IMG/VR virus record: IMGVR_UViG_3300038463_000730 | Location: 1-64,000 of that record | DNA: 64,000 nucleotides | Strand: one strand, 5' to 3' | In this document: positions 25,285 to 47,733 of the stretch, piece by piece | How the letters are laid out: each line of letters starts with the position of its first letter | Position numbering within the stretch: the stretch's first letter is position 1 | Translations under genes and position numbers: made by a program | Notes under the pieces: generated by a model | Seen by the model: the letters and a program-made list of their open reading frames with translations, nothing else | The model's database searches: none | Told to the model about the DNA's origin: nothing

Positions 25285-26202
25285 ATGAAGTCCCTCCTAA
25301 AAGGCATGCCACCCGGAATCGTCGGGAAACCTATATTTGAAAACGGTCAGACTCGTTACAGGACAGCCGGGCCGGAGGGACCGGGATATTGGACCCGCAC
25401 GGAACAAGGCTATATGATCTGGGAAGGTGACCCGGCAAAACCTCAAGGAGAACTAAACCGAGCTAGTTTAGAAGACGCTCATCAGGAATTGATCCGGATG
25501 AAGCAACTACTTGATGAAAATTCTCCGCTTCCTCCTCTCCCGCCCATTCCACCGCTTCCAGTCTTGGATATGGATCCGATCCGGCCCACTCCTTACTTTG
25601 CGGAAGTTCTCCAGGCCAATCAGAATCGACTTAAAGAAGACCAGACGAACATGGAAAGGTTGGCTCGGAGCTATGAAAATTCTAGGCCTGAAATGAAATT
25701 GGAAGAAAACCCAAAACGTTTTTGCGAAACATGTTCGCAAGAATTACCAGTCTTGTTTACCGGTTCGTATCGAGATAATGCCAACCTGAATGCCAATCTG
25801 AATATTCGCGCAGTTAAAGAGTTAAAATCCATGTACCTGAAAAGTCTAGCACGAACCATCGGATTAACATTCCAGAAACGGATCATGATTCTCGGGCCAA
25901 ACGTTTGGTATTTTTTGATTGGGTTGTGGTTGTTGCTTCGTTGGGTATTTGTTCTCACGGTAGGAATTTGGTGCGCTGGAGATCTGGCGAACCAATTCTA
26001 CTTCCATTGGAACGTATCAGTATGGCATGAGGGAAACCTATCCATGCCGTATCTAGCTTGGTTTAGAACTTGGCTTCTTGGTTTGCCGGTTGTTGTTTTG
26101 TTCTTTGCCGGTTGGGGAATTTTCGGAGCCATTCATCATTTCGGGATGATGCATGTAAAATATCGGCACATCCAACTTCCGCCCGGACCGCCTCCCGGAT
26201 GA
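25285..26202 (+). CDS. membrane protein, Pro-rich N-terminal half, CxxC, two to three TM segments
   Basis: 305 aa ORF. Confidence 0.7.
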   Translation: MKSLLKGMPPGIVGKPIFENGQTRYRTAGPEGPGYWTRTEQGYMIWEGDPAKPQGELNRASLEDAHQELIRMKQLLDENSPLPPLPPIPPLPVLDMDPIRPTPYFAEVLQANQNRLKEDQTNMERLARSYENSRPEMKLEENPKRFCETCSQELPVLFTGSYRDNANLNANLNIRAVKELKSMYLKSLARTIGLTFQKRIMILGPNVWYFLIGLWLLLRWVFVLTVGIWCAGDLANQFYFHWNVSVWHEGNLSMPYLAWFRTWLLGLPVVVLFFAGWGIFGAIHHFGMMHVKYRHIQLPPGPPPG

Positions 26203-26639
26203 AGCCGGAACTTGACGAATGGGAAATTCCCGAGTCCGAACAGGTTAGACAATTGTTATCATTCCTTCAGTTTACCTCCGGTAAAAGTGCTCCAGTAATT
26301 AAGAAAATCGAGCGAGCCTTTTATTTACTAGGACATCGTATTCGATTCAACGAAGAAACCGTTCAAGCTAGTGGATGGTTCGGGTTTGAATTCGTTTGCG
26401 ATCGTTGTCATGTTTGGTTTTTCGTGCCGAGTTCGACATTGGAAAGTGACACGTTTAAAGGCAATAAGGTTTACTCCATCTATGCTTTGAATCGTTCGAT
26501 TCTTTCCGACGATCGTTCATTCGGCCCGCGAGTCTTTCGGGTTACGGATAAAGAAGAGGTCCTGACTCGTATTCCTCATCACAACATTGATTTCTTGAAA
26601 CCAAATTGGGTCTGTCATAAGTATCAGGTTATGGTATGA
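26199..26639 (+). CDS. family A (H-CxxC-C) paralogue
   Basis: LLGH...CDRC...CHKYQVMV-stop. Confidence 0.8.
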   Translation: MKPELDEWEIPESEQVRQLLSFLQFTSGKSAPVIKKIERAFYLLGHRIRFNEETVQASGWFGFEFVCDRCHVWFFVPSSTLESDTFKGNKVYSIYALNRSILSDDRSFGPRVFRVTDKEEVLTRIPHHNIDFLKPNWVCHKYQVMV

Positions 26640-26643
26640 TGGT

Positions 26644-26967
26644 ATGAGCGACGTTCCGATAAAAGTTCAGGAGCTATTCACAGCCAGATTACGAACCCTT
26701 GGTCATCGGGTCAACACATTCTATGAGTACGGTTATCATGATTTAATTGGTCAATGTTCTATTTGTTTGGCCAATTTTGCAATCGTACCGGGTGCCTCGA
26801 ATCGGCCCGGCATCCGTCATTTGTATTCTTTGCGCGAATTGCATCGACCTAGTTATCCTCGTTCTCTGGATATTTGGGGTTGTCGCGTTGAAGAAGGAAT
26901 CATAACCCGCGATATCAAGCTTCATTTCGCTCCATTGGTTTGTCCAAAGTTTGCGGCTTTTCTTTAG
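26644..26967 (+). CDS. family A paralogue
   Basis: TLGH...CSIC...CPKFAAFL-stop. Confidence 0.8.
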   Translation: MSDVPIKVQELFTARLRTLGHRVNTFYEYGYHDLIGQCSICLANFAIVPGASNRPGIRHLYSLRELHRPSYPRSLDIWGCRVEEGIITRDIKLHFAPLVCPKFAAFL

Positions 26968-26978
26968 ATAAGGTTCGG

Positions 26979-27361
26979 ATGCATCCCGAGTTCGTCATCT
27001 ATCGTCACGTCGGAGGAAAAAGTATCGTTCCGAAAGTTGAGCGGATCTTTCGTTTGCTCGGGCACCAAATCGAATGGAGTCCGTACATTCGTCATTTGCA
27101 TGTCGATGGTTACGATTTTCTTTGTAACCGGTGTTACGAGCGATTCTTTATGCCGAGTAAGAATTTCGCTCCTTTCTCGGTAGACATCGAGTATCCTCTT
27201 TATTTTGTTTGCGAATGAAATGGTCTTTCGATATCGGTGACTTCAAACTTGGGAATTGGATGTTCCAGGTCACGGATTTTGTTGGAGAGGATCTGACTTG
27301 GGATGGTCTAGCTTTTCTTCGGCCTCAGTATCTTTGCAAACGGTTTCATGTTCTTCTTTGA
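26979..27361 (+). pseudogene. family A paralogue split by a frameshift
   Basis: LLGH...CNRC ends at 27218; C-terminal ...YLCKRFHVLL-stop is in the -1 frame and ends at 27361. Confidence 0.7.
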
Positions 27362-27364
27362 CGA

Positions 27365-27805
27365 TTGCGCCGGATTTACATTTATAACCAGATCATGACT
27401 CCGGTTTTTCGCGCCTCTCAGATTGTTCTGGAGATCAACCGACATCTTCGAGTGTTTGGTCATCGGATTTCTCGTCTCGTAACCGATTCTGGAAAAGAGC
27501 TTGGAAGTCGTGGAGCACGGCGTTGGCGTCCCGGAACGGGCAGTCGCTTTGCCAATTGCGTTCATTGTCATGTTCGACTCGAAGCATTTTTGTTTCATTC
27601 CGGTTCTGGTGATGGAATTTCGAATATGTTTTGGGTTAGTAAAGTGGAGAAAGTTTATCGGCCCGGTGGATATATTACTCGATTCTTCCAGATAAAAGAA
27701 ACATCTTCCGGATTTGCTTTGGATGAACCGTATGCCAAATTACTAGAGCGACGTCAGAAGTATCCTGAGATATTGGTTTGTACCAGGATTGCTGCGTTCT
27801 TATGA
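27365..27805 (+). CDS. family A paralogue
   Basis: VFGH...CVHC...CTRIAAFL-stop. Confidence 0.8.
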   Translation: MRRIYIYNQIMTPVFRASQIVLEINRHLRVFGHRISRLVTDSGKELGSRGARRWRPGTGSRFANCVHCHVRLEAFLFHSGSGDGISNMFWVSKVEKVYRPGGYITRFFQIKETSSGFALDEPYAKLLERRQKYPEILVCTRIAAFL

Positions 27806-28179: not shown

Positions 28180-28198
28180 GGACCGAGGCGAAGCCAAG

Positions 28199-28483: not shown

Positions 28484-28490
28484 CGAAGTC

Positions 28491-29114: not shown

Positions 29115-29474
29115 ATGAAATCCGATATCAAGAACCTTAAGCGCTTCCGAAGTCGGGTTAACAAAATGGCCAACCAATATGAGCTGGATAAAGCTCGCGA
29201 GTTGTTAACCATGTTCGAATGTGAAAGTTTGATTGACGTCGTATCTGCTTCATTGCCGCGATATCTTCTTCGTAACTGGAGGCTGGTCGAGTTTAAACAG
29301 CAAGAGACAGCGTACGATTCAACATCGTTTTGGAAGTTTCGTTATGGTCGTCGGAGGTTCTTTTGTCACTTAACCGTTAATTGCTACGATATTGTATCGT
29401 ACGTCAACTTCGAAGACCCGGAAAAGTACGAAGAAATCGAACGCCAGATTAAACGTTACGCGCAATACATGTAA
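29115..29474 (+). CDS. hypothetical protein
   Basis: 119 aa ORF. Confidence 0.65.
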   Translation: MKSDIKNLKRFRSRVNKMANQYELDKARELLTMFECESLIDVVSASLPRYLLRNWRLVEFKQQETAYDSTSFWKFRYGRRRFFCHLTVNCYDIVSYVNFEDPEKYEEIERQIKRYAQYM

Positions 29475-29481
29475 GCAACGT

Positions 29482-29778
29482 ATGAGTAATCAAGCTACCA
29501 AACTCGCGACCGTTCTTCTAGAACGCCTCGGCCACAAACCATCAGCTTGGACCGTGACCTCGCTCGGGTTCGATATTACGACTTGTACCGTATGCGATGC
29601 GCCGTTTCTCGTCGATAGCCGTGGTACTAAGATCATTCTCTCAACAACCGGCTTAATGAGTATTAGTGGTTGGGAGAAGACTTATACATTTAAACCAGAA
29701 GACGTTACATACTTTATTCGCCAGGTTGCTCGCCGGTTTCCTTGGGCTTTTTGCTTGAAGTTTCAGGTTATGGTATGA
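29482..29778 (+). CDS. family A paralogue
   Basis: RLGH...CTVC...CLKFQVMV-stop. Confidence 0.8.
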   Translation: MSNQATKLATVLLERLGHKPSAWTVTSLGFDITTCTVCDAPFLVDSRGTKIILSTTGLMSISGWEKTYTFKPEDVTYFIRQVARRFPWAFCLKFQVMV

Positions 29779-30152
29779 AACGCGATTCGATCAGCTTCTT
29801 TATTGAGAGGGACTCGGATCCATCTCATCAGAAATATGCCGAGCAGTTCATCCGTTTACTCGGCCATCGAACCAGTCCGTGGATCCTGGAACGCGCTCAT
29901 CCGAACTATGGTTCGTATTCCGGTATGTATCATCTTACTCGTTGCGCTCATTGTGACATGTTGTTCGACGTCAAGATCTATCATGATTCGGCCGATGTAA
30001 ATGCTGCCGATGGCTTAATGATATATTGGCGTAAGCACGAATATTCTGGCGAGAACGATGCCGATTTGGTCACTCGAATCAATAAAACGGCCAAAATGAT
30101 GCGCCAGCACCGAACCCAAGTCATCTGCCCGAGATTAACGGTATTGCTATAG
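29775..30152 (+). CDS. family A paralogue
   Basis: LLGH...CAHC...CPRLTVLL-stop. Confidence 0.8.
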   Translation: MKRDSISFFIERDSDPSHQKYAEQFIRLLGHRTSPWILERAHPNYGSYSGMYHLTRCAHCDMLFDVKIYHDSADVNAADGLMIYWRKHEYSGENDADLVTRINKTAKMMRQHRTQVICPRLTVLL

Positions 30153-30164: not shown

Positions 30165-30575
30165 ATGAACATCAAGCCCGAAGCACTATTTAAGAAGTTT
30201 CTCGAACGAATGCAACACACATATTCGATTCAGAAGAAGAAACCGACATCAAAACCAAACATCCACTTTGATGATGCGGAACTTCGTTTCGAAGAGATCG
30301 TTCGTGCTCGGTGCCATACTTGTCTTCGTGAGTACCGCCTGCTACTTACGAAAGAGACCAACTATACCAAAGTAGGTAAGGTAGGTCACACGTACGAAAT
30401 CCGTGTCAACGGTAATAAACAAGACAATGTATCGTACAACCGTTTGTTGTTTGGATTCGAGGGAGAGTTCGTCGATAACGAGATCATCATCCCGGAAGAT
30501 TGGTTTACTTCGGCTTACAAGATTGCGATGGAAAAGAAGCTATCTACCTGTACTAAATTCGATGTGATGAAATGA
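30165..30575 (+). CDS. family A paralogue
   Basis: RMQH...CHTC...CTKFDVMK-stop. Confidence 0.75.
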   Translation: MNIKPEALFKKFLERMQHTYSIQKKKPTSKPNIHFDDAELRFEEIVRARCHTCLREYRLLLTKETNYTKVGKVGHTYEIRVNGNKQDNVSYNRLLFGFEGEFVDNEIIIPEDWFTSAYKIAMEKKLSTCTKFDVMK

Positions 30576-31030
30576 GAAAACCGACTCATCTTCAAGAACT
30601 TCGCGCTTGGGCTCACGAACGAGCTAGATTGATCGGGCATTCAATAACTATTCCGAACCGATATTCTTTTGAGCCCGGAAGGCATCTTGGTTATTTAAGT
30701 TCTTGCGCTCATTGTCCACAGAAGTTTGTATTGTGTTTGGAACGGCGCCAACTTCAAAAAGACATATCCTATTCCGGCAAGTTCTCGCTTGAGACCGGTC
30801 ATCTCCTGTACCTGACCGATCAATATACCGAGGTTAGGAATGTCACGGGTTACCTTCGATCGATCTTTGGGCAAGAACTAAACAAGAAACGTTTCTCCGA
30901 TCTGCCGAGCTACTTTCATATCATCGGTGTCCACTGCTATCATTTGGATCGAACCATATCGATGGATGAACCGATGAAGAAACCGAGGACGAAGAAGTTC
31001 TTGTGTCCTCGGTTGAAGACGTTTTTATGA
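30572..31030 (+). CDS. family A paralogue
   Basis: LIGH...CAHC...CPRLKTFL-stop. Confidence 0.8.
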   Translation: MRKPTHLQELRAWAHERARLIGHSITIPNRYSFEPGRHLGYLSSCAHCPQKFVLCLERRQLQKDISYSGKFSLETGHLLYLTDQYTEVRNVTGYLRSIFGQELNKKRFSDLPSYFHIIGVHCYHLDRTISMDEPMKKPRTKKFLCPRLKTFL

Positions 31031-31500
31031 AAAACTACCCTGAGTCATTTTCTCATTATCCATGGTACATGGCATTCGAATACATCATCAACATGATGCG
31101 AATTGCGTGCCATCATCGGATGCAAATAGACGATACACCGCTTGTACGCACGATCGGAACCGACCAAGCATTTCTTGCCAATTGCATTGCTTGTGAAGCA
31201 ACGTTTATTATTATGTATCGCGCTTATTCTGGTGGAGCGGCTTCCATATGGGTTATGCAAACAATGGATTACGAAACTTTACAAACCAAAACTGATGTAA
31301 ACTTGATGTCTATTAACGGAATAACCGATATACGTAACGCATTCGGCACAGATGTCGTGAATAGTCTGCCGAATCCATTAGATGGACATTGGGTTGTTCC
31401 GGTAATGGTTCTTTACCAAGATGGTCTGGTTATTACACGACGAGAGCAAGATTATACGGACCAGATCAACTGGTGTTCGAGATTCAAATCATTCTGGTAA
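31027..31500 (+). CDS. family A paralogue
   Basis: ACHH...CIAC...CSRFKSFW-stop. Confidence 0.75.
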   Translation: MKNYPESFSHYPWYMAFEYIINMMRIACHHRMQIDDTPLVRTIGTDQAFLANCIACEATFIIMYRAYSGGAASIWVMQTMDYETLQTKTDVNLMSINGITDIRNAFGTDVVNSLPNPLDGHWVVPVMVLYQDGLVITRREQDYTDQINWCSRFKSFW

Positions 31501-31589: not shown

Positions 31590-31880
31590 ATGTCATATTC
31601 CTACACAAATTCCGTTATACCGAGCAAGTCACGGCGTTATGCTTTGCCTTGGGAGTTGAAAAACGGTCAATATATCCGCAGACTTTTTGCCGGAGAGACC
31701 GAATTAACTCCAATTATTTTGACGTTTGATTCTTTCCGTTGTTCATGGACGAGTCGCCCCGAATCCGCCTATTACGTTGGAATGTGTACCAGTCTTGAAG
31801 GAGCCAAATCAACGGCCGAGCGGCGTTTGAAGAAAATGGGGTTCCTATTCATAAGCAAACGTTTGGTTTGTATGTTGTGA
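31590..31880 (+). CDS. family B (PW...AK...L..xG) paralogue
   Basis: YALPW...EGAKSTAERRLKKMGF...KRLVCML-stop. Confidence 0.75.
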   Translation: MSYSYTNSVIPSKSRRYALPWELKNGQYIRRLFAGETELTPIILTFDSFRCSWTSRPESAYYVGMCTSLEGAKSTAERRLKKMGFLFISKRLVCML

Positions 31881-31895: not shown

Positions 31896-32084
31896 ATGTA
31901 CCGTTATCGCCAAATTGAAAACGTCGTTCCAACCGAACTTGAAAACTTACTGAATAAAGAAGCAAAGGATGGCTGGGAACTTGCCAGTACGTACAATATC
32001 ATGCAACGTGACCCGTGGTCTCACTACCACAATAAATTGAATGTCGTTCTGCGCCGTGATCGACGGTTAGATTCATTCGGATGA
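31896..32084 (+). CDS. DUF4177-like small protein
   Basis: YRYRQI...ELENLLNKEAKDGWELAS...VVLRR. Confidence 0.7.
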   Translation: MYRYRQIENVVPTELENLLNKEAKDGWELASTYNIMQRDPWSHYHNKLNVVLRRDRRLDSFG

Positions 32085-32436: not shown

Positions 32437-33042
32437 ATGATCAAAGAAGGAACCCGAATCACAGACGATCAGCCCCGAACACCGCTCATCGGTCAGTACA
32501 AGCTTCGCCAGGATGTCGTTCGTGTCTCAAAACGAATCGTGCGTCGTCTTGGGCATCTCATGCCGAAAGGAGCATGGCTCGAAACCTTCTCCTATCCTGG
32601 CTCGAAACTAACGGCGCGGTGTCGTCATTGTTCTCGCATTTTCGTTCTCTCGGGGCGCCCCGATGTCGGGCAAGGTAAGTGGAAGGTCGCGCCACAGTAC
32701 ACGACATCCGACGAACCAGGATTCATTGCGCGCTTCGAGCTTGACCCGTGGATTATGTTTGAAGTTATTTCAAACGCGGCAGAGATCGAGACGTCAACGG
32801 CGTTTCAAAGCGGTCGCGCGGCAACTTCTTCCGAACGGATCACGGATGTTGGCCCGAGGGATTGGGAACTGAACGCTTTTCAGCGCAGTTTTCATACGCT
32901 CGTGCAATTAGCAGGCGGAACACCTCCAACGTTCGAGGACGAATCTCTTGACGAAGAGACGAAGGAAGCTCGGCTCATTGAAAAGAAGCTCAAACCAATC
33001 GATAAACGTTTTTACTGCGCGAAGGTAAAGACCTGGTTGTAG
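32437..33042 (+). CDS. family A paralogue (long insert)
   Basis: RLGH...CRHC...CAKVKTWL-stop. Confidence 0.8.
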   Translation: MIKEGTRITDDQPRTPLIGQYKLRQDVVRVSKRIVRRLGHLMPKGAWLETFSYPGSKLTARCRHCSRIFVLSGRPDVGQGKWKVAPQYTTSDEPGFIARFELDPWIMFEVISNAAEIETSTAFQSGRAATSSERITDVGPRDWELNAFQRSFHTLVQLAGGTPPTFEDESLDEETKEARLIEKKLKPIDKRFYCAKVKTWL

Positions 33043-33082
33043 TCGGAAGTCGAGAGTCCGGTTGGGGAATCGTCTACTCGGG

Positions 33083-33478
33083 ATGATCGATGACTCGAAT
33101 GAGAGTGCTTATCGCTCGTACATGTTGCTGACGCATTTGGTTCTGCGTGTCATGGGCCATCGAATCGGTCCGTTCGCAAAACTTCGGGATGGAACCAGCA
33201 CACCGGGCGAGGGGCTCGTAGTCACGGATGAAGCGAAGTGTTCCGCTTGTGGCCGTTATTTTCGAGCGACCATGACAAACCGAACGTATTTTCAGATTCG
33301 CATTTCTCACGTTCATAACAATGTCATGTATTCGCCTCGCTCGTTCTACTTCGTAGCCAGCTTTGAGCCAACCAGCCGGGAATTGCTCGATGCACCGGTC
33401 AGCCATGTTCGTCGGTTCTTAGCAGCGGAGTCAAACTACAAGGAATCTATCTGTACACGTTTTAAGGTGATGGCTTAA
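33083..33478 (+). CDS. family A paralogue
   Basis: VMGH...CSAC...CTRFKVMA-stop. Confidence 0.8.
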   Translation: MIDDSNESAYRSYMLLTHLVLRVMGHRIGPFAKLRDGTSTPGEGLVVTDEAKCSACGRYFRATMTNRTYFQIRISHVHNNVMYSPRSFYFVASFEPTSRELLDAPVSHVRRFLAAESNYKESICTRFKVMA

Positions 33479-33497: not shown

Positions 33498-33809
33498 ATG
33501 AAAATTCTTTCCATTTTACCTTGGAACTCTTTCGGTAAGCTTAAGGCATTCAAGATTTTTCATACTCGTTCGTCGATGTACCCGACCCATACCCATTTCG
33601 CTCGGGCCGGTGTGATTCGTTCCTCTTCTTGGAAGAATAAAGTTGCCTACGTTTGCGAAGTGAAACGCTTTCGAAAGGAGAAGGTTGTTCTCTTTGGCAT
33701 CGCCTATTCGCTCAAAGCGGCGAAAGACAAAGTGGATGAGTTTCTGCGCCAGAATAACGTTCGCATCAAAACCCGTAAACAGATCGAGCGACTCCAGGTG
33801 ATGAAATGA
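33498..33809 (+). CDS. family B paralogue
   Basis: SILPW...AAKDKVDEFLRQN...ERLQVMK-stop. Confidence 0.75.
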   Translation: MKILSILPWNSFGKLKAFKIFHTRSSMYPTHTHFARAGVIRSSSWKNKVAYVCEVKRFRKEKVVLFGIAYSLKAAKDKVDEFLRQNNVRIKTRKQIERLQVMK

Positions 33810-34096
33810 ATCGTAAGACTGCTTTCCCTTGGCGTAAAGTGTTTGCTGTTTCGGAAGTCTATGCCAGGTTCGATCCGAAAGGCGTTAAGATTGCGCAGAT
33901 CATCGTTCGAAAAAGTGACGATGGTTCGTTCGCAATCTGGAATATCCTGGCGACCGAGATGATCGACGGTGATGCGATCACCGGGCGTTGCGAGACGTTG
34001 GACTACGCATTCGAATTAGTGGATGACACGTTAGAGATGCACGGCTGGACTCTTCTTTGCACGGATATGAAGTCGGAAACAGCAATCCGTTTGTAG
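33806..34096 (+). CDS. family B paralogue
   Basis: TAFPW...YAFELVDDTLEMHGW. Confidence 0.7.
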   Translation: MNRKTAFPWRKVFAVSEVYARFDPKGVKIAQIIVRKSDDGSFAIWNILATEMIDGDAITGRCETLDYAFELVDDTLEMHGWTLLCTDMKSETAIRL

Positions 34097-34097: not shown

Positions 34098-34442
34098 ATG
34101 ATTACTCGGTATGTACTTCCTTGGACCGCCATTCCGAAGGCTCTACGAGCCCCGGATTATCGGTACTATTACTCACGAACAATCGTTTCCCCAACCATTC
34201 CGTATGGCATGGGGTTGTCTGCTGGTTCGGTTCATCTTCTTAATGGGAAATACAAAGGACAATGTGGTCCGAATGATTGGCAATGGGCCGTATGGAACTG
34301 GCAAGAGGAACCTCTTCGGCATTCAGTTGATTCATGGTCTGGAGTCGGTTGCACGGAAGAACAAGCTCGTCGTTATGTAGATAAAAAGCTACGTAAGCTT
34401 GGATTCAAATTCGTTACAAAAAAGTGTTTGGTGTTCCTATGA
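34098..34442 (+). CDS. family B paralogue
   Basis: YVLPW...QARRYVDKKLRKLGF...KKCLVFL-stop. Confidence 0.75.
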   Translation: MITRYVLPWTAIPKALRAPDYRYYYSRTIVSPTIPYGMGLSAGSVHLLNGKYKGQCGPNDWQWAVWNWQEEPLRHSVDSWSGVGCTEEQARRYVDKKLRKLGFKFVTKKCLVFL

Positions 34443-34891
34443 GCGAAGCTGCAACCAAACGCCCGGATGAAAACGACATCCTACGAATCGTACATAATAC
34501 CATTACAGGAGCTATTCGTCGGATTGGTCACCAGCTCGCCGAAAACAAATGGAAAGAAGGACCGGTCATTTACGGATATCATCACGGTCATGCGTGGTGG
34601 CAGGATTGTGCCCGTAAATGTAAATGGCGATTCGCAATCGAGAAACAGCTTGATATTGCCGGTCGCACCCGTTTCGATATACGAGCGGTCGTCGTTCATA
34701 ACGAGAATCCGTTCATGCAAGAGATCCTGGAAAGCCACTCGCTATTTGAAATCGTTCTAGGACCGGACTTGAACCTCATCGGAGATTACACAAAACAGAA
34801 CGTCATCATTCCACTAGACGAGAACGTGATGAGAACGTTTGTTCTCGGCAGTAAAGATTGTCTATGCAGTCGTTTAACAAATTTCATCTAG
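34439..34891 (+). CDS. family A paralogue
   Basis: RIGH...CARKC...CSRLTNFI-stop. Confidence 0.8.
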   Translation: MSEAATKRPDENDILRIVHNTITGAIRRIGHQLAENKWKEGPVIYGYHHGHAWWQDCARKCKWRFAIEKQLDIAGRTRFDIRAVVVHNENPFMQEILESHSLFEIVLGPDLNLIGDYTKQNVIIPLDENVMRTFVLGSKDCLCSRLTNFI

Positions 34892-35540: not shown

Positions 35541-35551
35541 TTCGGATCGCC

Positions 35552-38069: not shown

Positions 38070-38398
38070 TGGCCCGTTCTTTGTACCATAGGAAAGCTGA
38101 ATCTGGCTTGCGTACCCTAGGTCATAAGATCGAGGTACGTGAGGTCATCCCGACTCTCAACGAATTGAACGCGCGAGCCGTGTTTACCGACTATGTGGTA
38201 AAACTGTGGGTATGTTTAAAATGCAAAAAAGTATTCATGCTACACAAAACGCCCAGCTCGCAGTACGTTACCAAGCACGTTGAACAATTCTACTCAACAT
38301 TCATGTTTACTGTCCTGCGTGGCGAGGTGTATGGTCAGACCTTCCTAAACAAGGTTGACAGGTATTTCATATGCGACCGACTGAAGAATCTAGCGTAG
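38069..38398 (+). CDS. family A paralogue
   Basis: TLGH...CLKC...CDRLKNLA-stop. Confidence 0.8.
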   Translation: MARSLYHRKAESGLRTLGHKIEVREVIPTLNELNARAVFTDYVVKLWVCLKCKKVFMLHKTPSSQYVTKHVEQFYSTFMFTVLRGEVYGQTFLNKVDRYFICDRLKNLA

Positions 38399-38772
38399 AA
38401 GAGTCCGGCATAAGAGAAGCTGAAATCGTCAGCTTCAATCTGGACTGGAGCATTTGCGAATCGAACGTGGCGAAGATTCTTACGAGCTGGGGTCACCAGA
38501 TCGACGAGCAATCCTGGGTCAAAAACAAAGCCGATGAAGGCCGATTAATTTGGTGCTCGAACGAATCTTGTCGAAAACTTTTCCAGGTCACTTTAATCGG
38601 TGGCACAAACATCGCCTGGAACATCGGACAGCTTATCGTGAAGGAAGATGAAGAGCATCTTTATCGACGCGGAATCATCATCTTGTTCAACGACATTTAC
38701 TACAATGTCAGCCACTTAAAACGGGGAGTTAAACCCGAATTCTTTTGTTCTCGGTACATTAACTTCAGGTGA
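38371..38772 (+). CDS. family A paralogue
   Basis: SWGH...CSNESC...CSRYINFR-stop. Confidence 0.8.
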   Translation: MRPTEESSVEESGIREAEIVSFNLDWSICESNVAKILTSWGHQIDEQSWVKNKADEGRLIWCSNESCRKLFQVTLIGGTNIAWNIGQLIVKEDEEHLYRRGIIILFNDIYYNVSHLKRGVKPEFFCSRYINFR

Positions 38773-39267: not shown

Positions 39268-39533
39268 TGGACGAGTGCCCTCTATGTGGGTCGTGCGTTC
39301 CGTCGCTGTGTGATTGCTCGGCAACCCTGAAACAAATTCACAACGATCTAGTCGAGATCAATCGGCGAATCGAAAGTGAACGACCTCGGAATACACCGAT
39401 CACGATCCTTCCAGTCCCGGATAAGAAAATCAAATACTCACCCGACCTCAGAACTCCTGCGGAACCAACCTCGAAACTAGCTCAGTTCTTTAGACGTATA
39501 AAGGATTGGTTTCGTGGTATATGGTCGTGGTGA
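39267..39533 (+). CDS. hypothetical protein (N-terminal CxxC...CxC)
   Basis: 88 aa ORF. Confidence 0.6.
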   Translation: MDECPLCGSCVPSLCDCSATLKQIHNDLVEINRRIESERPRNTPITILPVPDKKIKYSPDLRTPAEPTSKLAQFFRRIKDWFRGIWSW

Positions 39534-39904
39534 CATTAGCAGCAATTCAAGCGCCAATAATCAAACGAGCCGTTCGAGTCTTCCAGCACTTCGGTCATCA
39601 TTTCGATCTTCAGCGGGTCAAACTAAAACCAAACTTCCGTCCTATCTCTCGCTTTCCTGACCCGAACATCAATCTAGCTGTCGGACCGAACAAAGGACAG
39701 AAAGTCTATTGCGCAGGGTACGCTTCGGTTTGTACGGTGTGCAGCGTTAATCTAGGCATGCAAGAAAGCCCATTCGAACATGAGTGGGCTTTTTCAATTA
39801 ACGAGTTGGTACTTCGGGATTACTCAGAAGACGAGCAGCTAAACACCGAACTACACCGTAGATACCCAGGTCTGGTTTGTCCCCGTCTTAGGAATTTCTT
39901 ATGA
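39521..39904 (+). CDS. family A paralogue
   Basis: HFGH...CTVC...CPRLRNFL-stop. Confidence 0.8.
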   Translation: MVVVTLAAIQAPIIKRAVRVFQHFGHHFDLQRVKLKPNFRPISRFPDPNINLAVGPNKGQKVYCAGYASVCTVCSVNLGMQESPFEHEWAFSINELVLRDYSEDEQLNTELHRRYPGLVCPRLRNFL

Positions 39905-40284
39905 TCGTCAACACCGAGCAACAAGCCAAACTTCACAAAGTTGTCAGTGATTGTGTTACGGCTTTCGACTTCATTGACCATTCGTTCCCATTTAGACTTC
40001 TACGGCAAGCATCGATGGTAGCAGCCCACATTCCTGAGGTCAAAGAATATCCTCGAACAACTACAACACGATTCGTTGGTTATTGCCGAAACTGTTCTAT
40101 TGAAATAATGTTAACTGTCGGATCATTCCCAATGCGTACGTACACTCACTATGATTTGTTTTTCAATCGAGAACGGTCTTTCAATCTCGTTCTAGACCGC
40201 ACGTTCATTAAAGACCTGGGGTTTCGTACACACTCGAATGGTTTCACAATACCGATTTGCAAAAAGTTCGAGGCTTTCGTATGA
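39901..40284 (+). CDS. family A paralogue
   Basis: FIDH...CRNC...CKKFEAFV-stop. Confidence 0.75.
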   Translation: MIVNTEQQAKLHKVVSDCVTAFDFIDHSFPFRLLRQASMVAAHIPEVKEYPRTTTTRFVGYCRNCSIEIMLTVGSFPMRTYTHYDLFFNRERSFNLVLDRTFIKDLGFRTHSNGFTIPICKKFEAFV

Positions 40285-40619
40285 GAACGAAGATTCAGAT
40301 TGAACTGGAGACGTTAGCCCGAGCCATGAGTAAACGTTTTCTACACAAATTCTGGGGCAAAGAATACATCGGCTTAATCAAACGAGTCAAAGGGTACTGT
40401 AGTCACTGCGGCATTCAAATTCTATTGGTCAAAGGAAAGGGTGCCGAGCATTCGTTATTCCTTGGGACACGACACTTTCGCGTGGGCAATGAGCGGTTCG
40501 CTTCATCCGGAACTTATCCTAGCTTGATCGTTTCAAAAATGCTGATCATGCCATCAGATCCGATATCGAGAGAATTGCTTCTTGAGCACGGCTGTAAAAA
40601 GTTCGTAGCTTTACTATGA
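40281..40619 (+). CDS. family A paralogue
   Basis: RFLH...CSHC...CKKFVALL-stop. Confidence 0.75.
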   Translation: MRTKIQIELETLARAMSKRFLHKFWGKEYIGLIKRVKGYCSHCGIQILLVKGKGAEHSLFLGTRHFRVGNERFASSGTYPSLIVSKMLIMPSDPISRELLLEHGCKKFVALL

Positions 40620-40634: not shown

Positions 40635-40991
40635 ATGACAGCTGTAATTGGAATGGCGGAATTGAACCTGGAAACAAAGCAAACATTTGAGGAGCTGGTC
40701 CAGATTGCCCGTCCCTACGTTCGTAAATTAGGCCACACGATTGGCGAGTGGGAGCTTGGGCCTCGACCTCACATCAGCTTCCACATCTTCACAATTTGCA
40801 AAGCGTGCAAGAAGAAAATCAAATGCCAGAAGTGCCTTGTCGTTGGGACTGAAGACGAGATCACGTATCGCTGGGAGATTATCGTTGGTAACTACATAAG
40901 TGTCTCGTTGAGCCGTGAAGCCGAACTAGTCGAAAACATTAAAGACACGTGGGAACGATGTCTCTGTACTAGACTATCGGTGATGCTGTAA
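40635..40991 (+). CDS. family A paralogue
   Basis: KLGH...CKAC...CTRLSVML-stop. Confidence 0.8.
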   Translation: MTAVIGMAELNLETKQTFEELVQIARPYVRKLGHTIGEWELGPRPHISFHIFTICKACKKKIKCQKCLVVGTEDEITYRWEIIVGNYISVSLSREAELVENIKDTWERCLCTRLSVML

Positions 40992-40992: not shown

Positions 40993-41319
40993 ATGAAATA
41001 TCTTACGGAAGATAAACTACAGGTCATCCACACTGGCCTCCGAAAGATGGGACATCGCATCGATTGGAAATCTCCAGATGAACCGGTGTTCAATCTAAAT
41101 GGGGAACTGATCCTGGTCGGAACATGCCAGAATTGTCATCAACTGCTTGAATGTTTTTATTCTGGAATGAGTTCGGTCTGTAACGTCTACGTTGACAAGG
41201 TTCGAACGATATACATTTCGAAAAAGGGTGACGTTCGAATAAGTGGGATGAATGGGATGAAATATTACCCCGTGAGTTACGGCTCGATTCAATGCCCGAA
41301 GCTTGTTGTCATGCTTTAG
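40993..41319 (+). CDS. family A paralogue
   Basis: KMGH...CQNC...CPKLVVML-stop. Confidence 0.8.
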   Translation: MKYLTEDKLQVIHTGLRKMGHRIDWKSPDEPVFNLNGELILVGTCQNCHQLLECFYSGMSSVCNVYVDKVRTIYISKKGDVRISGMNGMKYYPVSYGSIQCPKLVVML

Positions 41320-41327: not shown

Positions 41328-41606
41328 TTGGCAAATCCACAGACTCAATCAATCGCCAGCATTTTCGCAGCGATAAAAAAGAAAACGGGGCATAAAGTCG
41401 ATAGGCTCGATAATGAATTCGTTCGCGGTTGGCTCGTTTATACGGCCAGGTGTCGATACTGCAATTCAGAAATTGAGCTTTACACAGAGGGAAATCTAGT
41501 CGCGATCAATAAATTCATTGCCGGTTCGTTTGAAAACAATCGATGGCGAATCAATCCATTGGTCACGAAGATGCTCTTGTGTAAAAGATTGAAGGTGATG
41601 TTGTGA
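41328..41606 (+). CDS. family A paralogue
   Basis: KTGH...CRYC...CKRLKVML-stop. Confidence 0.8.
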   Translation: MANPQTQSIASIFAAIKKKTGHKVDRLDNEFVRGWLVYTARCRYCNSEIELYTEGNLVAINKFIAGSFENNRWRINPLVTKMLLCKRLKVML

Positions 41607-41929
41607 TGCCGCTGATCATTTGGCCGTTGATTCCAAAGCCTGTCCCATCCGGGACAATCGAACAAAAGACCGAGTGGTTTTTAGCAATGCTTTGCGAGGT
41701 CCGCCGCCGTGCAGGACATCGCTGGGCACCTCTAAAGGAGGGAGCCTTTGACGTGCCGAGGGTCATTTGCCTCTACACATTCTGCCTCTCGTGTGGCATA
41801 TACATTCACATGTACCCGGAGGAACCACACCTTTACTTCCAGAATGGAACTGGAGGCTTACAGTTCGGTTTTGACATCCCAGACGGTTGGAAACCAAAGG
41901 TTTGCGACAAGCTGGCGTCATTCGTTTAG
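41603..41929 (+). CDS. family A paralogue
   Basis: RAGH...CLSC...CDKLASFV-stop. Confidence 0.8.
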   Translation: MMPLIIWPLIPKPVPSGTIEQKTEWFLAMLCEVRRRAGHRWAPLKEGAFDVPRVICLYTFCLSCGIYIHMYPEEPHLYFQNGTGGLQFGFDIPDGWKPKVCDKLASFV

Positions 41930-42203: not shown

Positions 42204-42219
42204 TGGCACCCGGTTTGCA
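42204..42219 (+). promoter_or_regulatory. sigma54-type promoter
   Basis: TGGCACCCGGTTTGCA fits TGGCAC-N5-TTGCA; intergenic, about 80 nt upstream of a gene. Confidence 0.65.
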
Positions 42220-42906: not shown

Positions 42907-43362
42907 ATGGTTGATCACACCGTACCGCGCTTCGTCGAGCTGGCATTCGGCAAACTTCAGCCCTTCGATCGATGCCCGCTGTGTGAGTCGAAAGCTCCGG
43001 CATGCTTTTATCTTCGAGAGTCGAACAGCACACGGTATTTTATTGATCCGAAGGATGACTCCCGAACCATCATCTCGGATCAAATCCTGCACTTTAGCTG
43101 CCGTACTCAGTCAATCCAGATCGTTCAGAAGGTTGAAGCAAATAGAAGACTTGTTACCTCGTCATGTCAGGTAGAACGTAATGGTTCCCTGTACATAGCG
43201 GTGATCGACTTCGCACAAAACAACACTTCTTTTCGGAAGACACGCGCAAAGCATGAAGATGGCTACCAGTTCAGTGTAACGGGGTGCCGCAAACGCCTGT
43301 TCCTCTCTGAGAGCGTAGATGAATGGTGTGACTCACTAGACCGCTTCTTTAACTTCGCATGA
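42907..43362 (+). CDS. hypothetical protein (CPLC)
   Basis: 151 aa ORF. Confidence 0.6.
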   Translation: MVDHTVPRFVELAFGKLQPFDRCPLCESKAPACFYLRESNSTRYFIDPKDDSRTIISDQILHFSCRTQSIQIVQKVEANRRLVTSSCQVERNGSLYIAVIDFAQNNTSFRKTRAKHEDGYQFSVTGCRKRLFLSESVDEWCDSLDRFFNFA

Positions 43363-43431: not shown

Positions 43432-44043
43432 ATGATACCGGACCTGACCCAAGCGCTCGCCAATGCCGCGATCGGCATGAAACGCATTCATTTCACGCCC
43501 GGTGACGAAAACTCGTACCAGAAGTCGTACGTCGAGGGAGAAGAGTTGATCATCAACGATGATCGAAATCGCGCTCATAATGGATTCCGGATGAACATCC
43601 GAACATTGGTTTTTACCGAACTCGCGAAGGTTCGTAACGAAACCAAACTATTCAGGCCAACGTTCGAGCCTGCAACACGAGCCACTGGGATCCGACCGAT
43701 CGCTATTCAAATCAATGACAGCTCGGTCATGAACGATCATTGGGAAGCTAGTTTGATCTATCGCTGCGCATTGAACTTGGAGCGGCGGTACTTGATGGAC
43801 ACCGTACTCTATTACATGTCGCGGCGAATCAAAACTGCCAACTCTGAACTGCGGATTGAATGGGAAGCACACAACCATAACTGCCGCATTACAGAGTACC
43901 CGATTCTCACAGAGGAGAACCCGAGCGTCGAAGCAATTCGGGCGGCACGGACCGGGAAACTAAAGCACACGTTTAAAAACGTGAATCGTGAATTCTTTGA
44001 AACGATCGGTTCAAAAATCGAGCGATTACAAACGTGGCTCTAA
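43432..44043 (+). CDS. hypothetical protein with C-terminal tag ERLQTWL
   Basis: 203 aa ORF. Confidence 0.7.
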   Translation: MIPDLTQALANAAIGMKRIHFTPGDENSYQKSYVEGEELIINDDRNRAHNGFRMNIRTLVFTELAKVRNETKLFRPTFEPATRATGIRPIAIQINDSSVMNDHWEASLIYRCALNLERRYLMDTVLYYMSRRIKTANSELRIEWEAHNHNCRITEYPILTEENPSVEAIRAARTGKLKHTFKNVNREFFETIGSKIERLQTWL

Positions 44044-45256: not shown

Positions 45257-45304
45257 CACTGTTCTGATTTGTCGAGGCGTTCATTCGGCGGTCATTCCTC
45301 ATGA

Positions 45305-45841: not shown

Positions 45842-45967
45842 GTTTCGAGGGTGCATAAGCTCAGGGGTCCAGTCCCGCCGATGTTGTATGTAGCGCTGCT
45901 ACAACGTTGGAAGGTAGAGCTAGGTCGTCAAAGGCCTGGTCGTCGGTCCGAATCCGGCTGCATCCAC

Positions 45968-46678
45968 TTATTCTCCAGCTTCACGCTCAGTATCGGGGAC
46001 AGGTTCTCGCCTCGTTTGAGGTTGAATCTCGAACGGCTCCGCTGGTAACTCGGGAGGTTCGGCCTCACCGTAATTCCATTGCTGTTCGTATGGCTCTGGT
46101 TCTTCTTTTGGTTCCGTTGGTAAGACGGGTGCAATATCAACTGCGGCAACCCCGTTCTCCTGAATACGAGCCAACCTATGAAGCTCCTTAATTGAGAATA
46201 ACGACTGAAACAGTATTCGTACATTGTGACGGTCAGCTTGCGAATCGATCGCATCTAGTTCGTAGATGATCTTCGCTACATCCAATCGCGCCTTCGTCAC
46301 CGGATTATCCGGGATTTCGAATTCCGGATCAATATCGAGCGGAGGAGCCTCGGTTTGCAGATCTGCAATCAGATCATCAAGCCATGGCTTATAGTAGTTC
46401 GGAATGAACGAATCAGCAAGATAACGGTACTGACTAAGTGATCTAGTAACCTGCTTTCTTGCTTCCGGCCTTCCGCCAACTTCTAGGTATTCAGATTCAT
46501 ATCGAGCGATCATTACCTGGATATTGGCTAGGTCATTAGGAATCGAATCTCGAATACCTTCAAGAGCCGAGATCATTTGTTCCTTCGACAGCAAAGGAGC
46601 TCGAACGGCTGAGTAATCCTGACCTCGTTTAATTGCCAAGCGATTGGCTAATTCGAATGTTTTTGTGAATCTAGACAT
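45968..46678 (-). CDS. hypothetical protein, Pro/Glu-rich C-terminus
   Basis: 236 aa ORF. Confidence 0.7.
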   Translation of the reverse strand: MSRFTKTFELANRLAIKRGQDYSAVRAPLLSKEQMISALEGIRDSIPNDLANIQVMIARYESEYLEVGGRPEARKQVTRSLSQYRYLADSFIPNYYKPWLDDLIADLQTEAPPLDIDPEFEIPDNPVTKARLDVAKIIYELDAIDSQADRHNVRILFQSLFSIKELHRLARIQENGVAAVDIAPVLPTEPKEEPEPYEQQWNYGEAEPPELPAEPFEIQPQTRREPVPDTEREAGE

Positions 46679-46774
46679 ATCAAATACATGCTATAACAGT
46701 GGCATCTAAATTGTTCGAACGATCGCCGATGTCGAGCTGTACTTTGGCTTGTTCTTTTCTCTAAAGGTATTTGT

Positions 46775-47308
46775 GTGCATATCTTCCTTAGCGTAATTGG
46801 TTTGCTTTGTTCGATCGGGACAACCATCCTGTTCAACCAAATCATTCTTCCAGGTTACTTTCGGACACGAAAGTTTAACTACATTCTGGAAGACATAATT
46901 AACGAGGACGTTGCATCCATTATCTTTCGATTGGAAATGAACAATTGGTATGAAGCATTCGATCGTATGGCTACGAAGAACGTTCGTAATCAACTTCTGC
47001 GAACTCTTCAGCGCGGGTTTCGCCTGGGCAGCTCGGTCGAGCAAAGACCGCTCATCGTCGGTCAGGCGCTCGGCAATCTAGCCCGTATGAGCGGCAAGGC
47101 CCGGCAACGTGCAATCAAGATAACGATCATGCTTTCACTTCGCCATCAGAACTACGATTTCATCGTTGGATTATTGGACCGTAACAAAACGATCAAGACT
47201 AAGATCTTTCTTTCTACGATCAAAACAATCAACAACCCGAACCGTGAACTTGTATTCAAATACATGAACCGAGATCACGATACAGCAAAGCTATTAGTCA
47301 TGCTTTAG
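46775..47308 (+). CDS. membrane-anchored helical protein with C-terminal tag KLLVML
   Basis: N-terminal hydrophobic segment; 177 aa. Confidence 0.65.
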   Translation: MHIFLSVIGLLCSIGTTILFNQIILPGYFRTRKFNYILEDIINEDVASIIFRLEMNNWYEAFDRMATKNVRNQLLRTLQRGFRLGSSVEQRPLIVGQALGNLARMSGKARQRAIKITIMLSLRHQNYDFIVGLLDRNKTIKTKIFLSTIKTINNPNRELVFKYMNRDHDTAKLLVML

Positions 47309-47310
47309 TT

Positions 47311-47733
47311 ATGATTAACATTACAGATAAAGAATTCAAACTGTTTCGGGCTGCGTGTCCGAAATGCAACAACTCACTTTTCCCCACAAGGCTTGAGGCG
47401 AATTACGATCGGTATTGCAAGAAGTGTAATTACCGCGCCGCATTCTATCTTGACACGAGCAAGCGTACCACCTTCCTGAACTACGAGCAAATCTACGGCA
47501 CCCGGGAACACGGTATCAAAACTGTATTGGTCCGAATCGATTACACCGAACAAGCCGCGATAATCACCGTGTTGAATAAAGGATTGTTCATTCCCTCTTC
47601 TCTGGATCGAGAGTCTCGTGAGGAATACAAAATGCCATTGAAAGATGAGTACTTTGACGACAACTGCTTGATACGAATGGACGCATTAGACGAGATCGTA
47701 ACCAGATTCAAAAAATTGGGTATCATGCGCTAA
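47311..47733 (+). CDS. Zn-ribbon protein with C-terminal tag KKLGIMR
   Basis: CPKC...CKKC. Confidence 0.7.
   Translation: MINITDKEFKLFRAACPKCNNSLFPTRLEANYDRYCKKCNYRAAFYLDTSKRTTFLNYEQIYGTREHGIKTVLVRIDYTEQAAIITVLNKGLFIPSSLDRESREEYKMPLKDEYFDDNCLIRMDALDEIVTRFKKLGIMR

Follow-up and report, generated by a model that had tools for sequence, protein, structure and literature searches.

The region examined is a 64,000-nucleotide stretch (hereafter the window; positions 1 to 64,000 of IMG/VR record IMGVR_UViG_3300038463_000730) of a roughly 435-kb phage genome. Between 26.2 and 47.7 kb, a block of co-oriented small genes is found on the + strand, many of which overlap their neighbors as ATGA or lie 1-20 nt apart. 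Within this block, and at one further gene near 60 kb, 35 ORFs end in the pattern [KR]-[LFVIY]-x-[VANIST]-[MLFW]-x-stop, whereas the − strand of the window has one such ORF. Coordinates of the tagged genes, and of informative untagged or degenerate relatives, are collected in Table 1.

Most of the tagged ORFs (about 27) belong to a new and very divergent family, termed A, which has an invariant His, a CxxC motif and an invariant Cys at position −8 from the C-terminus. The Cys co-varies with the His and CxxC, and together these residues probably form a zinc site. In this family the conserved tail is longer than six residues (hydrophobic-hydrophobic-Cys-x-[KR]-...), such that the tag directly follows the last Cys. 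The same tail also ends members of a second family (B), a zinc-ribbon family (C), a membrane protein and two other singletons, giving at least six classes.

Family A gave no significant match to known zinc-finger or zinc-ribbon families in any library searched. In Pfam, no family recurred among members, and only isolated weak hits were observed (best E of 9e-4, in 1 of 25). A search of PHROG gave one isolated hit (E of 7.5e-4, in 1 of 56), and the best E values were 0.13 for PDB by sequence, 0.24 for PDB by fold and 0.2 for BFVD by fold.

Table 1. Tagged genes and selected untagged relatives in the window. Gene starts are approximate. L001, L006 and L007 denote three diverged genomes that encode relatives of these genes.
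Positions	Strand	Class	C-terminus	Remarks
26199..47733	+	Gene block		Holds 34 of the 35 tagged ORFs
26199..26639	+	Family A	KYQVMV	
26644..26967	+	Family A	KFAAFL	
26940..27361	+	Family A	RFHVLL	Apparently split by a frameshift; 26940-27218 carries GH and CxxC, 27209-27361 carries Cys-x-RFHVLL; the two pieces were analysed separately
27365..27805	+	Family A	RIAAFL	
29392..29778	+	Family A	KFQVMV	
29775..30152	+	Family A	RLTVLL	
30165..30575	+	Family A	KFDVMK	
30572..31030	+	Family A	RLKTFL	
31003..31500	+	Family A	RFKSFW	
31590..31880	+	Family B	RLVCML	N-terminal L-P-W motif, no zinc ligands
31896..32084	+		RLDSFG	62-aa ORF; matches the pattern, but the gene is uncertain
32437..33042	+	Family A	KVKTWL	L006 orthologue has the same tail
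33062..33478	+	Family A	RFKVMA	
33498..33809	+	Family B	RLQVMK	
33806..34096	+	Family B	TAIRL	No tag; L006 orthologue also lacks it
34098..34442	+	Family B	KCLVFL	Loose match
34424..34891	+	Family A	RLTNFI	
34858..35265	+	Family A	RYRNLR	
35262..35540	+	Family B	RLKVLL	Protein modelled for family B
35412..35857	+	Family B-like	KHLLLG	Degenerate variant of the tag; L006 orthologue ends KHLLLA
35854..36642	+	Family A	RLEILK	Tandem two-domain protein; only the C-terminal domain carries the tag; internal domain aligns to the profile only up to position 72 of 107
36569..37075	+	Family A	RFNILR	
37079..37426	+	Family A	RLRVMM	
37399..37755	+	Family A	KVKAFL	
37728..38069	+	Family A		Keeps the last Cys but stops 2-3 residues later, no tag; L001 orthologue does the same
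38054..38398	+	Family A	RLKNLA	
38371..38772	+	Family A	RYINFR	
39506..39904	+	Family A	RLRNFL	L001 orthologue has an identical tail
39901..40284	+	Family A	KFEAFV	
40257..40619	+	Family A	KFVALL	
40635..40991	+	Family A	RLSVML	Protein modelled for family A; predicted helix 12-31, four strands, helix 103-109, tag helix 112-117
40993..41319	+	Family A	KLVVML	
41328..41606	+	Family A	RLKVML	
41603..41929	+	Family A	KLASFV	Last gene of the array
42907..43362	+	Singleton	RFFNFA	L001 orthologue ends KFFNFA
43432..44043	+	Singleton	RLQTWL	L001 orthologue is 29% identical overall and ends KVQAWL
46775..47308	+	Membrane protein	KLLVML	One N-terminal membrane helix; tag follows a polar linker; L001 orthologue ends RLLNLL
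47311..47733	+	Family C	KLGIMR	N-terminal CxxC...CxxC; L001 orthologue ends KVSIMS; L007 has an array of relatives, several of them tagged
59970..60347	+	Family A	RLQVML	Outlying gene

Enrichment and conservation of the C-terminal tag

A sequence-only reading of the window had noted that proteins of three otherwise unrelated classes share this C-terminal pattern. That observation was confirmed and is far beyond chance, and all of the termini it listed are present at the genes named. When the + strand was divided into stop-to-stop ORFs of at least 40 codons, 35 of 440 matched the pattern, all at 26.0-47.7 kb except for the outlying gene near 60 kb, as compared with 1 of 469 on the − strand. The background rate of the pattern among internal 6-mers is 0.32%. 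Of the + strand genes in the block that do not belong to family A, 8 of 18 carry the pattern exactly at the C-terminus, against 0 of 96 other non-A genes in the window (binomial, 4e-16; Fisher, 8e-8).

To avoid circularity, a weight matrix was trained only on the last six residues of 23 family A proteins. With this matrix, 8 of 16 non-A genes in the block exceeded the 99th percentile of internal 6-mers and 6 of 16 exceeded the 99.9th, whereas the corresponding counts for other non-A genes in the window were 1 of 88 and 0 of 88. The matrix trained on family A alone thus picked out B, C and the singletons in the block. None of 13 genes in the next 10 kb of the genome carries the tag.

The sequence-only reading required correction in several respects. 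The tagged proteins fall into at least six classes rather than three, and, given that about 27 of the 35 are one family, the more than 30 different cargo domains it proposed are mostly variable inserts of one scaffold. It had also listed core genes that lack the tag. AlkB, the histidine-kinase-like ATPase, IF-1 and DHFR are indeed present without it; a dCMP deaminase was found, but a dUTPase was not seen.

Profile comparison with hhalign of family A against family B aligned only the last 16 columns, at a probability of 0.6%, and the singletons were not hit by the family A profile at E ≤ 1. The tag is retained in the diverged relatives L001, L006 and L007 through class-conserving changes such as K/R, V/N and M/L. 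Orthologous pairs are 50-70% identical over the last 10 residues, as compared with 15-40% over the 20 residues before them. Codon use at conserved positions is highly varied, with 8 codons at −6, 13 at −5 and 10 at −2, and no general DNA repeat was detected at gene ends; this is therefore a protein-level motif, kept by selection on the protein, and not a DNA repeat. Only four genomes of one rare lineage contribute to these comparisons (31 hits among 1.84 billion representative proteins), which limits the independence of the examples.

The tag is separable from the family A fold. The internal domains of three tandem family A proteins keep the His and CxxC but lose the tag, and one family A gene, together with its orthologue, stops just after the Cys. 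All tags end at the stop codon.

Read from the stop codon, the tail consists of a basic residue at −6 (K or R in 87 of 100 tails, with no other residue exceeding 4 of 100), a hydrophobic residue at −5, a free position at −4, a small or β-branched residue at −3, a large hydrophobic residue at −2 and a free last residue (L in 43%, then R, T, V, K, A, I, S and G), the last being the least conserved position. It is usually preceded by two hydrophobic residues and a turn. Positions −3 and −2 are coupled in the same way in different families: V, I or C at −3 goes with M, L or I at −2 (43 to 3), and F or W at −2 goes with a small residue at −3 (32 of 35; Fisher, 1.4e-8 overall and 2e-6 for the window alone). 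Such coupling fits one binding pocket of fixed size, although it could also reflect inheritance of two tail subtypes or a self-contained local packing rule.

AlphaFold2 predicted the tag as a short ordered helix, with pLDDT of about 94 in family A and 78-87 in family B, rather than as the terminal β-strand envisaged in the sequence-only reading or as a floppy tail. Families A and B were predicted with different topologies. That the motif might simply be a strand of one common fold had been named beforehand as a condition that would refute the idea, and the models did not bear this out. In family A the tag is joined to the fold through the presumed zinc-ligand Cys at −8 and may be packed on its own domain rather than free.

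Interpretation of the shared tail

Taken together, these data partly support the interpretation offered by the sequence-only reading, namely that many different domains dock on one partner, either a phage hub protein or a host protease or PDZ protein, through a shared terminal element. The favored explanation, which is held tentatively and at somewhat less than even confidence, is that the tail is a portable C-terminal docking peptide at the very end of small cytoplasmic proteins with otherwise unrelated bodies. It would present one conserved face to a single common partner, so that each variable body is brought to the same place. In this view, the most likely outcome is recruitment to a cytoplasmic proteolytic or unfolding machine, such that the tagged proteins would be either adaptors that deliver whatever their variable body binds or proteins that are themselves removed on schedule; packaging into the virion is a less likely variant. 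The presence of the tag on a membrane-anchored protein, after a polar linker, and its absence from housekeeping-type enzymes in the same block are in line with this explanation. The analysis itself establishes the motif, its enrichment, its protein-level conservation, its presence on unrelated families, its separability from fold A and its restriction to the true C-terminus. By contrast, the existence of a common partner is inferred, no partner having been identified, and its identity, including any binding to the ClpX N-terminal zinc-binding domain, and the events that follow docking are conjecture.

A possible but less likely alternative is that the tail is an intramolecular structural cap, a short C-terminal helix that closes a hydrophobic patch on each small domain (in family A, together with the zinc site) and has no common partner. 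Families A, B and the others would then share it through very old common ancestry, exchange of 3′ ends inside the array or convergence on a good capping sequence. The confident helical models, the start of the tag one residue after the invariant Cys in family A, and a conserved Trp near the N-terminus of both A and B that could pack against the tail are consistent with such a cap. However, family A domains exist without the tag, the tag ends proteins with unrelated architectures, including one where it follows a polar linker, and the motif and the −3/−2 coupling are the same across folds; moreover, high pLDDT does not show burial. An alternative in which the tail acts through composition rather than through a specific partner is considered unlikely. 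Here, it would be a membrane-targeting amphipathic helix of the MinD/FtsA kind, or a generic chaperone-binding or instability element, i.e. a hydrophobic core flanked by a basic residue or a non-polar C-terminus. The tail is indeed basic and hydrophobic, predicted helical and at the extreme C-terminus; non-polar C-terminal pentapeptides destabilize proteins in Escherichia coli, and DnaK prefers Leu-rich cores flanked by basic residues. Nevertheless, only 6-7 residues lie beyond the folded part in family A, which is short for a membrane anchor, one tagged protein already has its own membrane helix, and the position-specific preferences at −6 and −3, with the −3/−2 coupling, argue for specific recognition.

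A by-product of nucleotide-level signals at gene junctions, either the ribosome-binding site and start codon of the next gene in a translationally coupled operon or a recombination junction for gene cassettes, is very unlikely and already largely refuted as the main cause. At −4 the third codon base is G in 19 of 35 tags (background of 25%), and AAG outnumbers AAA 7 to 1, against 258 to 344 overall, which gives AGG/AAGG-like strings. At −1 the third base is A in 16 of 35 (background of 22%), 14 of 35 stops are ATGA overlaps, and a few tails share 27-34 nt at 70-80% identity. However, the conserved positions (−6, −5, −3 and −2) are encoded by many synonymous and non-synonymous codons within one residue class, orthologues change residues within class and not silently, and untagged genes in the same block are coupled equally tightly. 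The tag is also kept where the next gene is 60-200 nt away, or at the end of the array (35540, 38772, 41929 and 44043). This overlay, by which the two free positions carry the ribosome-binding site and ATGA start of the next gene, explains only those two positions.

A more far-reaching possibility, which remains speculative and is considered unlikely, is that a huge phage encodes an array of about 35 modular adaptor proteins, each with a different target-binding body and all with one universal docking peptide that plugs them into a single hub, for example an unfoldase-protease. If so, the phage could remove or relocate dozens of host proteins, such as defence proteins, with one machine. This would be a natural bacterial-virus counterpart of F-box/PRANC adaptors and of engineered XB-bait degraders.

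Comparison with known terminal elements

The one concrete candidate considered for a host-protease docking site was the XB tail of SspB, which tethers this adaptor to the N-terminal zinc-binding domain of ClpX (PMC3983244; PMC12373786). XB is likewise a short peptide at the extreme C-terminus with a Leu, a basic residue, β-branched or aliphatic residues and a variable or basic end (E. coli SspB ends RPALRVVK), and it is modular: fused to a bait peptide, it delivers an untagged target to ClpXP (PMC12373786), which is the mechanism proposed here. The resemblance is compositional. The mean BLOSUM62 score of the tagged set against XB was 2.0, as compared with a background of −5.0, but 47 of 200 shuffles of XB scored as well, in a comparison for which only Enterobacterales SspB tails were collected and no family-wide XB profile was built. 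XB follows a long flexible linker, whereas in families A and B the tail directly follows ordered structure in the models, a polar linker being seen only in the membrane protein at 46775-47308.

The analogy drawn in the sequence-only reading with poxvirus ankyrin-repeat proteins carrying a C-terminal PRANC/F-box-like domain is only conceptual. In both cases a virus expands families of variable binding domains that share one C-terminal element, which in poxviruses plugs them into a host degradation hub. PRANC, however, is a folded helical domain of tens of residues (about 30-40) on one protein family, whereas the present element comprises 6-10 residues on at least six families. No Pfam family reached significance for A, B or the singletons, and the part shared by A and B is at most 16 alignment columns.

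Encapsulin cargo-loading peptides and bacterial microcompartment encapsulation peptides are short terminal peptides by which unrelated cargo proteins dock into one shell protein, and, given that encapsulin shells have the same fold as phage capsids, head packaging is conceivable. The tag consensus nevertheless lacks their Gly-Ser-Leu type core, the tagged genes lie among small non-structural genes next to nucleotide-metabolism genes, and no capsid-like or shell family appeared in Pfam and PHROG scans of the window's ORFs. The capsid targeting sequence of phage T4 internal proteins (its use is mentioned in PMC10229621) is also a phage-encoded short terminal peptide that sorts several unrelated proteins to one destination, but it is N-terminal and cleaved by the prohead protease, whereas the present motif is C-terminal and nothing suggests cleavage.

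As with ssrA-type and other C-terminal ClpXP/FtsH degrons, the C-terminus is hydrophobic and the position at the very end matters. Those signals, however, depend on the last two or three residues, small and non-polar in ssrA-like degrons, and on the free carboxylate, whereas here the last residue is variable and −2 is large. A β-clamp-binding motif of the Gln-Leu-x-Leu-Phe type requires a conserved Gln at its first position, but the corresponding position (−6) is K or R in most tails and Gln was not among the residues recorded there. Similarly, a CaaX prenylation box has its Cys at the fourth position from the end, whereas the Cys associated with this tag is at −8 and is found only in family A.

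Genomic context and enrichment of the C-terminal motif

The source record, IMGVR_UViG_3300038463_000730, comprises 434,688 bp and shares its coordinates with the 64-kb window. The same sequence lies in a 502,994-bp JGI contig, and pieces identical at 100% occur in three other sequencing runs. The gene content is that of a phage. Here, searches against Pfam identified an HNH endonuclease, endonuclease VII, DHFR, dCMP deaminase, RNase T-like exonucleases, an AlkB-like oxygenase, an IF-1 homologue, GMP reductase/IMPDH and a papain-like protease. Nothing similar was found in the INPHARED phage collection, and no PHROGs hit was obtained for ten test proteins. The source is a rare, very large phage. 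Coordinates of the features discussed are collected in the table below.

Features of the window and of its diverged relatives L001 and L007 (nucleotide positions; gene starts are approximate)
Sequence	Position	Strand	Feature
Window	22700-24690		Region of about 2 kb with no long ORF that separates the − strand and + strand gene blocks; holds several short direct repeats, for example CAATGGAATGGAGCC three times
Window	24376-24429		CTGGCAGATAACCT-like repeats within this region
Window	24308-24322, 24337-24351	+	Exact sigma-54-type −24/−12 motifs (TGGCAC-N5-TTGC), in tandem upstream of the + strand block
Window	26940-27361		Family A gene apparently split by a frameshift; N-terminal part with GH and CxxC in one frame, tagged C-terminal part in another
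Window	28491-29108		AlkB-like 2OG-Fe(II) oxygenase gene
Window	29011-29106		Six tandem copies of a 12-nt unit encoding repeated Thr-Val-Ile-Pro, at the end of the AlkB-like gene
Window	35262-35540		Family B gene, modelled
Window	35854-36642		Tandem two-domain family A protein
Window	37728-38069		Family A gene ending two or three residues after the Cys
Window	38836-39533		Two untagged, better-conserved genes in the middle of the family A array
L001	1094-1731		Two untagged, better-conserved genes in the middle of the family A array
L007	12200-12526		Likely counterpart of the first of these two genes
Window	40635-40991		Family A gene, modelled
Window	42204-42218	+	Exact sigma-54-type motif (TGGCAC-N5-TTGC), about 85 nt upstream of the conserved gene starting near 42305
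L001	4146-4160		One-mismatch copy (TGGCAT-N5-TTGC), at the equivalent place upstream of the orthologue of that gene
L007	14425-14439		One-mismatch copy (TGGCAT-N5-TTGC), at the equivalent place upstream of the orthologue of that gene
Window	42907-43362		Tagged singleton
Window	43432-44043		Tagged singleton
Window	46775-47308		Tagged singleton, membrane-anchored
Window	47311-47733		Tagged family C gene, N-terminal CxxC...CxxC
Window	44195-45256, 56725-56949, 57238-58047		Histidine-kinase-type ATPase domain protein, translation initiation factor IF-1 homologue and papain-family cysteine protease; the kinase gene is absent from the syntenic part of L001
Window	49274-50591	−	Second paralogue family, five genes of 87-89 aa, with its own conserved C-terminus, Gly-His-[Val/Pro]-[Met/Leu]-Glu-stop
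L001	9054-9858		The second paralogue family in the relative, which keeps this C-terminus
Window	59970-60347	+	Tagged gene outside the 26.0-47.7 kb block

The observation made in the sequence-only reading, that otherwise unrelated proteins end in one shared pattern, held, and every terminus that it quoted is present in the sequence. A pattern for the motif hit 35 of 440 + strand ORFs and 1 of 469 − strand ORFs, and all of the + strand hits lie at 26.0–47.7 kb with the exception of 59970–60347. The pattern occurs in 0.32% of internal 6-mers. Among genes outside family A, 8 of 18 in the block carry it exactly at the end, against 0 of 96 elsewhere (binomial 4e-16). Given that this pattern was written after the data had been seen, the test was repeated without circularity, using a log-odds matrix built only from the last six residues of 23 family A proteins. 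With this matrix, 6 of 16 non-A genes in the block scored above the 99.9th percentile of internal 6-mers, against 0 of 88 other non-A genes in the window. The next 10 kb of the genome contained no tagged gene among 13.

Signals outside the coding sequence were also sought. Scans of the block for sigma-70 promoters and for terminators were not above shuffles. The sigma-54-type motifs listed in the table suggest that RpoN-type promoters drive parts of this block. Rfam gave no match in the whole window, including the region of about 2 kb with no long ORF.

Proteins that carry the tag and their relatives

Family A comprises about 27 genes in the window and is extremely divergent, with a mean column identity of 11–14%. 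Across 56 sequences from four genomes, four residues are invariant: a His at the end of an N-terminal helix (Gly-His), the two Cys of a CxxC and a Cys eight residues from the end. This is the signature of a His-Cys3 zinc site, as inferred from sequence alone. The two pieces of the family A gene that appears to be split by a frameshift, which may reflect a pseudogene, a sequencing error or a programmed shift, were analysed separately.

An exhaustive profile search of 1.84 billion representative proteins with family A returned only 31 hits. All but one are small proteins of the same kind (95–256 aa), 18 of which are encoded in the window itself. The top hit, a 1068-aa protein (P0001), matched the central CxxC part of the profile 15 times and is probably an unrelated repetitive zinc-knuckle protein. 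No significant relative of family A was detected in Pfam, PHROG, PDB or BFVD. A word-indexed homologue search with the family A alignment returned only the window's own proteins, and further remote family A hits were traced to contigs of about 1 kb. Scans of IMG/VR with two tagged singletons recovered only the source genome itself, and a metagenome scan with the conserved neighbour gene recovered one unrelated small phage contig, with no family A gene and no tag.

Family B has five or six genes in the window, with an N-terminal Leu-Pro-Trp motif and no zinc ligands. Profile–profile comparison of A and B aligned only the last 16 columns, at a probability of 0.6%, and the singletons were not hit by the family A profile at E ≤ 1. 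The tag is therefore shared by at least six otherwise unrelated classes.

Three diverged contigs carry syntenic arrays, namely L001 (10 kb), L006 (3.9 kb) and L007 (17 kb and more distant). Their orthologues keep the tag through class-conserving changes, for example KLLVML/RLLNLL, KLGIMR/KVSIMS, RFFNFA/KFFNFA and RLQTWL/KVQAWL, the last in a pair only 29% identical overall. Over 20 tagged orthologous pairs, identity is 50–70% at each of the last ten positions, and 95% at the Cys, whereas it is 15–40% at all but one of positions −11 to −30 (55% at −17). Given that only four genomes of one lineage were available, the independence of these examples is limited. L007 adds further tagged classes, and tagged genes on both strands, and 7 of its 35 non-A ORFs passed the 99.9th percentile with the family A matrix. 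The two untagged, better-conserved genes in the middle of the array have no Pfam match and may be considered as candidates for a partner of the tag.

Coding, predicted structure and separability of the tag

The conserved positions of the tag are encoded very diversely, with eight codons at −6, thirteen at −5 and ten at −2. No DNA repeat is common to the gene ends. Only three small subgroups share 27–34 nt at 70–80% identity, and a DNA repeat was rejected as the cause. By contrast, the two positions that are free at the protein level carry nucleotide signals. At −4, the third base is G in 19 of 35 tags (background 25%), and AAG is strongly preferred over AAA, which makes AGG/AAGG strings like the AAGGTT seen upstream of spaced starts. 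At −1, the third base is A in 16 of 35 tags (background 22%), because 14 stops are ATGA overlaps with the next start. The tail is therefore dual-coded, in that a peptide motif occupies positions −6, −5, −3 and −2, while the ribosome-binding site and start codon of the next gene are threaded through −4 and −1. This overlay accounts only for positions −4 and −1 and was rejected as the cause of the motif. Tagged genes that are followed by gaps of 60–200 nt, or that end the array, keep the motif, and untagged genes in the block are coupled just as tightly.

AlphaFold2 prediction of the family A protein encoded at 40635–40991, with the 56-sequence alignment, gave a mean pLDDT of 85.5. The model has a helix at 12–31 that ends at the His, four strands with the CxxC between the first two, a helix at 103–109, the Cys at 111 and the tag as a helix at 112–117, and the last block has a pLDDT of about 94. 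The model of family B (35262–35540) gave a mean pLDDT of 86.1, with four strands, a helix at 65–78, a short strand and the tag as a helical turn at 86–89, where pLDDT is 87 and then 78. The order of elements differs between the two models, and fold searches of both against PDB and BFVD gave nothing significant. The tag is thus predicted as an ordered short helix, whose hydrophobic side chains may be either buried or exposed, and not as a free tail or as the terminal beta-strand proposed in the sequence-only reading.

Three observations indicate that the family A fold does not need the tag. Three tandem two-domain proteins (35854–36642 in the window, and the proteins P0020 and P0027) have an internal domain that keeps His and CxxC but whose alignment to the family profile stops before the tag columns, whereas the C-terminal domain aligns through the tag. 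In addition, 37728–38069 and its L001 orthologue both end two or three residues after the Cys, and one family B gene and its orthologue lack the tag. So the tag is kept only at true C-termini and can be lost without loss of the gene.

A further rule was observed inside the tag. In 100 non-redundant tails, a beta-branched or Cys residue at −3 goes with Met, Leu or Ile at −2 (43 to 3), while Phe or Trp at −2 goes with a small or polar residue at −3 (32 of 35). Fisher's test gave 1.4e-8 overall and 2e-6 for the window alone, where the counts are 19:1 and 4:15. The same tendency holds in the non-A tails. Such volume-compensating coupling fits two neighbouring side chains sharing one pocket of fixed size, and its recurrence on unrelated bodies is easier to explain by one external pocket than by six different internal ones, although inheritance of tail subtypes is not excluded.

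Possible docking role and comparison with known systems

The interpretation of the sequence-only reading, that many different domains dock on one partner through the tag, was partly supported. On evidence that is computational throughout, the best-supported reading is a portable docking peptide that would bring variable bodies to one common cytoplasmic partner. The distribution of the motif, its protein-level conservation and its absence from internal domains were observed directly, whereas the partner, docking on it and the binding of zinc by family A are inferred. The cytoplasmic location is likewise an inference, based on the presence of Arg-Thr-Arg-Lys just after the helix of the membrane-anchored member, which by the positive-inside rule places the tagged end in the cytoplasm.

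One concrete candidate was examined, namely the XB tail of the adaptor SspB, which ends RPALRVVK and tethers SspB to the ClpX N-domain (PMC3983244), and whose sequence was confirmed from a paper and from the E. coli genome. Fused to a bait peptide, XB is sufficient to send an untagged protein to ClpXP (PMC12373786). Some tags look very similar to XB. As a set, however, the tags score no better against XB than against 47 of 200 shuffles of XB, so the resemblance appears compositional. A protein search and a genome scan for further XB sequences returned only Enterobacterales with an invariant tail. ClpX remains one candidate among several, which include other unfoldases, chaperones, or a phage hub or capsid protein. 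The main rival reading is that the tag is an intramolecular cap. This is favoured by the ordered prediction and by adjacency to the presumed zinc ligand, but the separability of the tag and its spread across families count against it.

If the tag does dock on one partner, it would give a direct handle on the function of a large set of orphan megaphage genes, could serve as a portable tag for tools, and would show that megaphages organise host takeover through a hub-and-adaptor design. There is a real, if small, chance that the tag marks a system of this type. Even if the tag turns out to be structural, families A and B are new predicted folds restricted to one rare lineage.

Short terminal peptides that send unrelated proteins to one destination are known from encapsulins, T4 internal proteins and protease adaptors. 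Literature searches for a comparable phage tag found nothing relevant, and no report was found of one that marks dozens of small proteins of several families in a phage. The concept of a terminal peptide shared by unrelated cargo is known from SspB XB, for encapsulin and microcompartment peptides, from the T4 capsid targeting sequence and from poxvirus PRANC. Families A and B are new. The tag does not conform to the defining sequence or architecture of the encapsulin and microcompartment peptides, of the T4 capsid targeting sequence or of PRANC, and it differs from SspB XB in architecture, in that in the models of families A and B it directly follows ordered structure and not a flexible linker.
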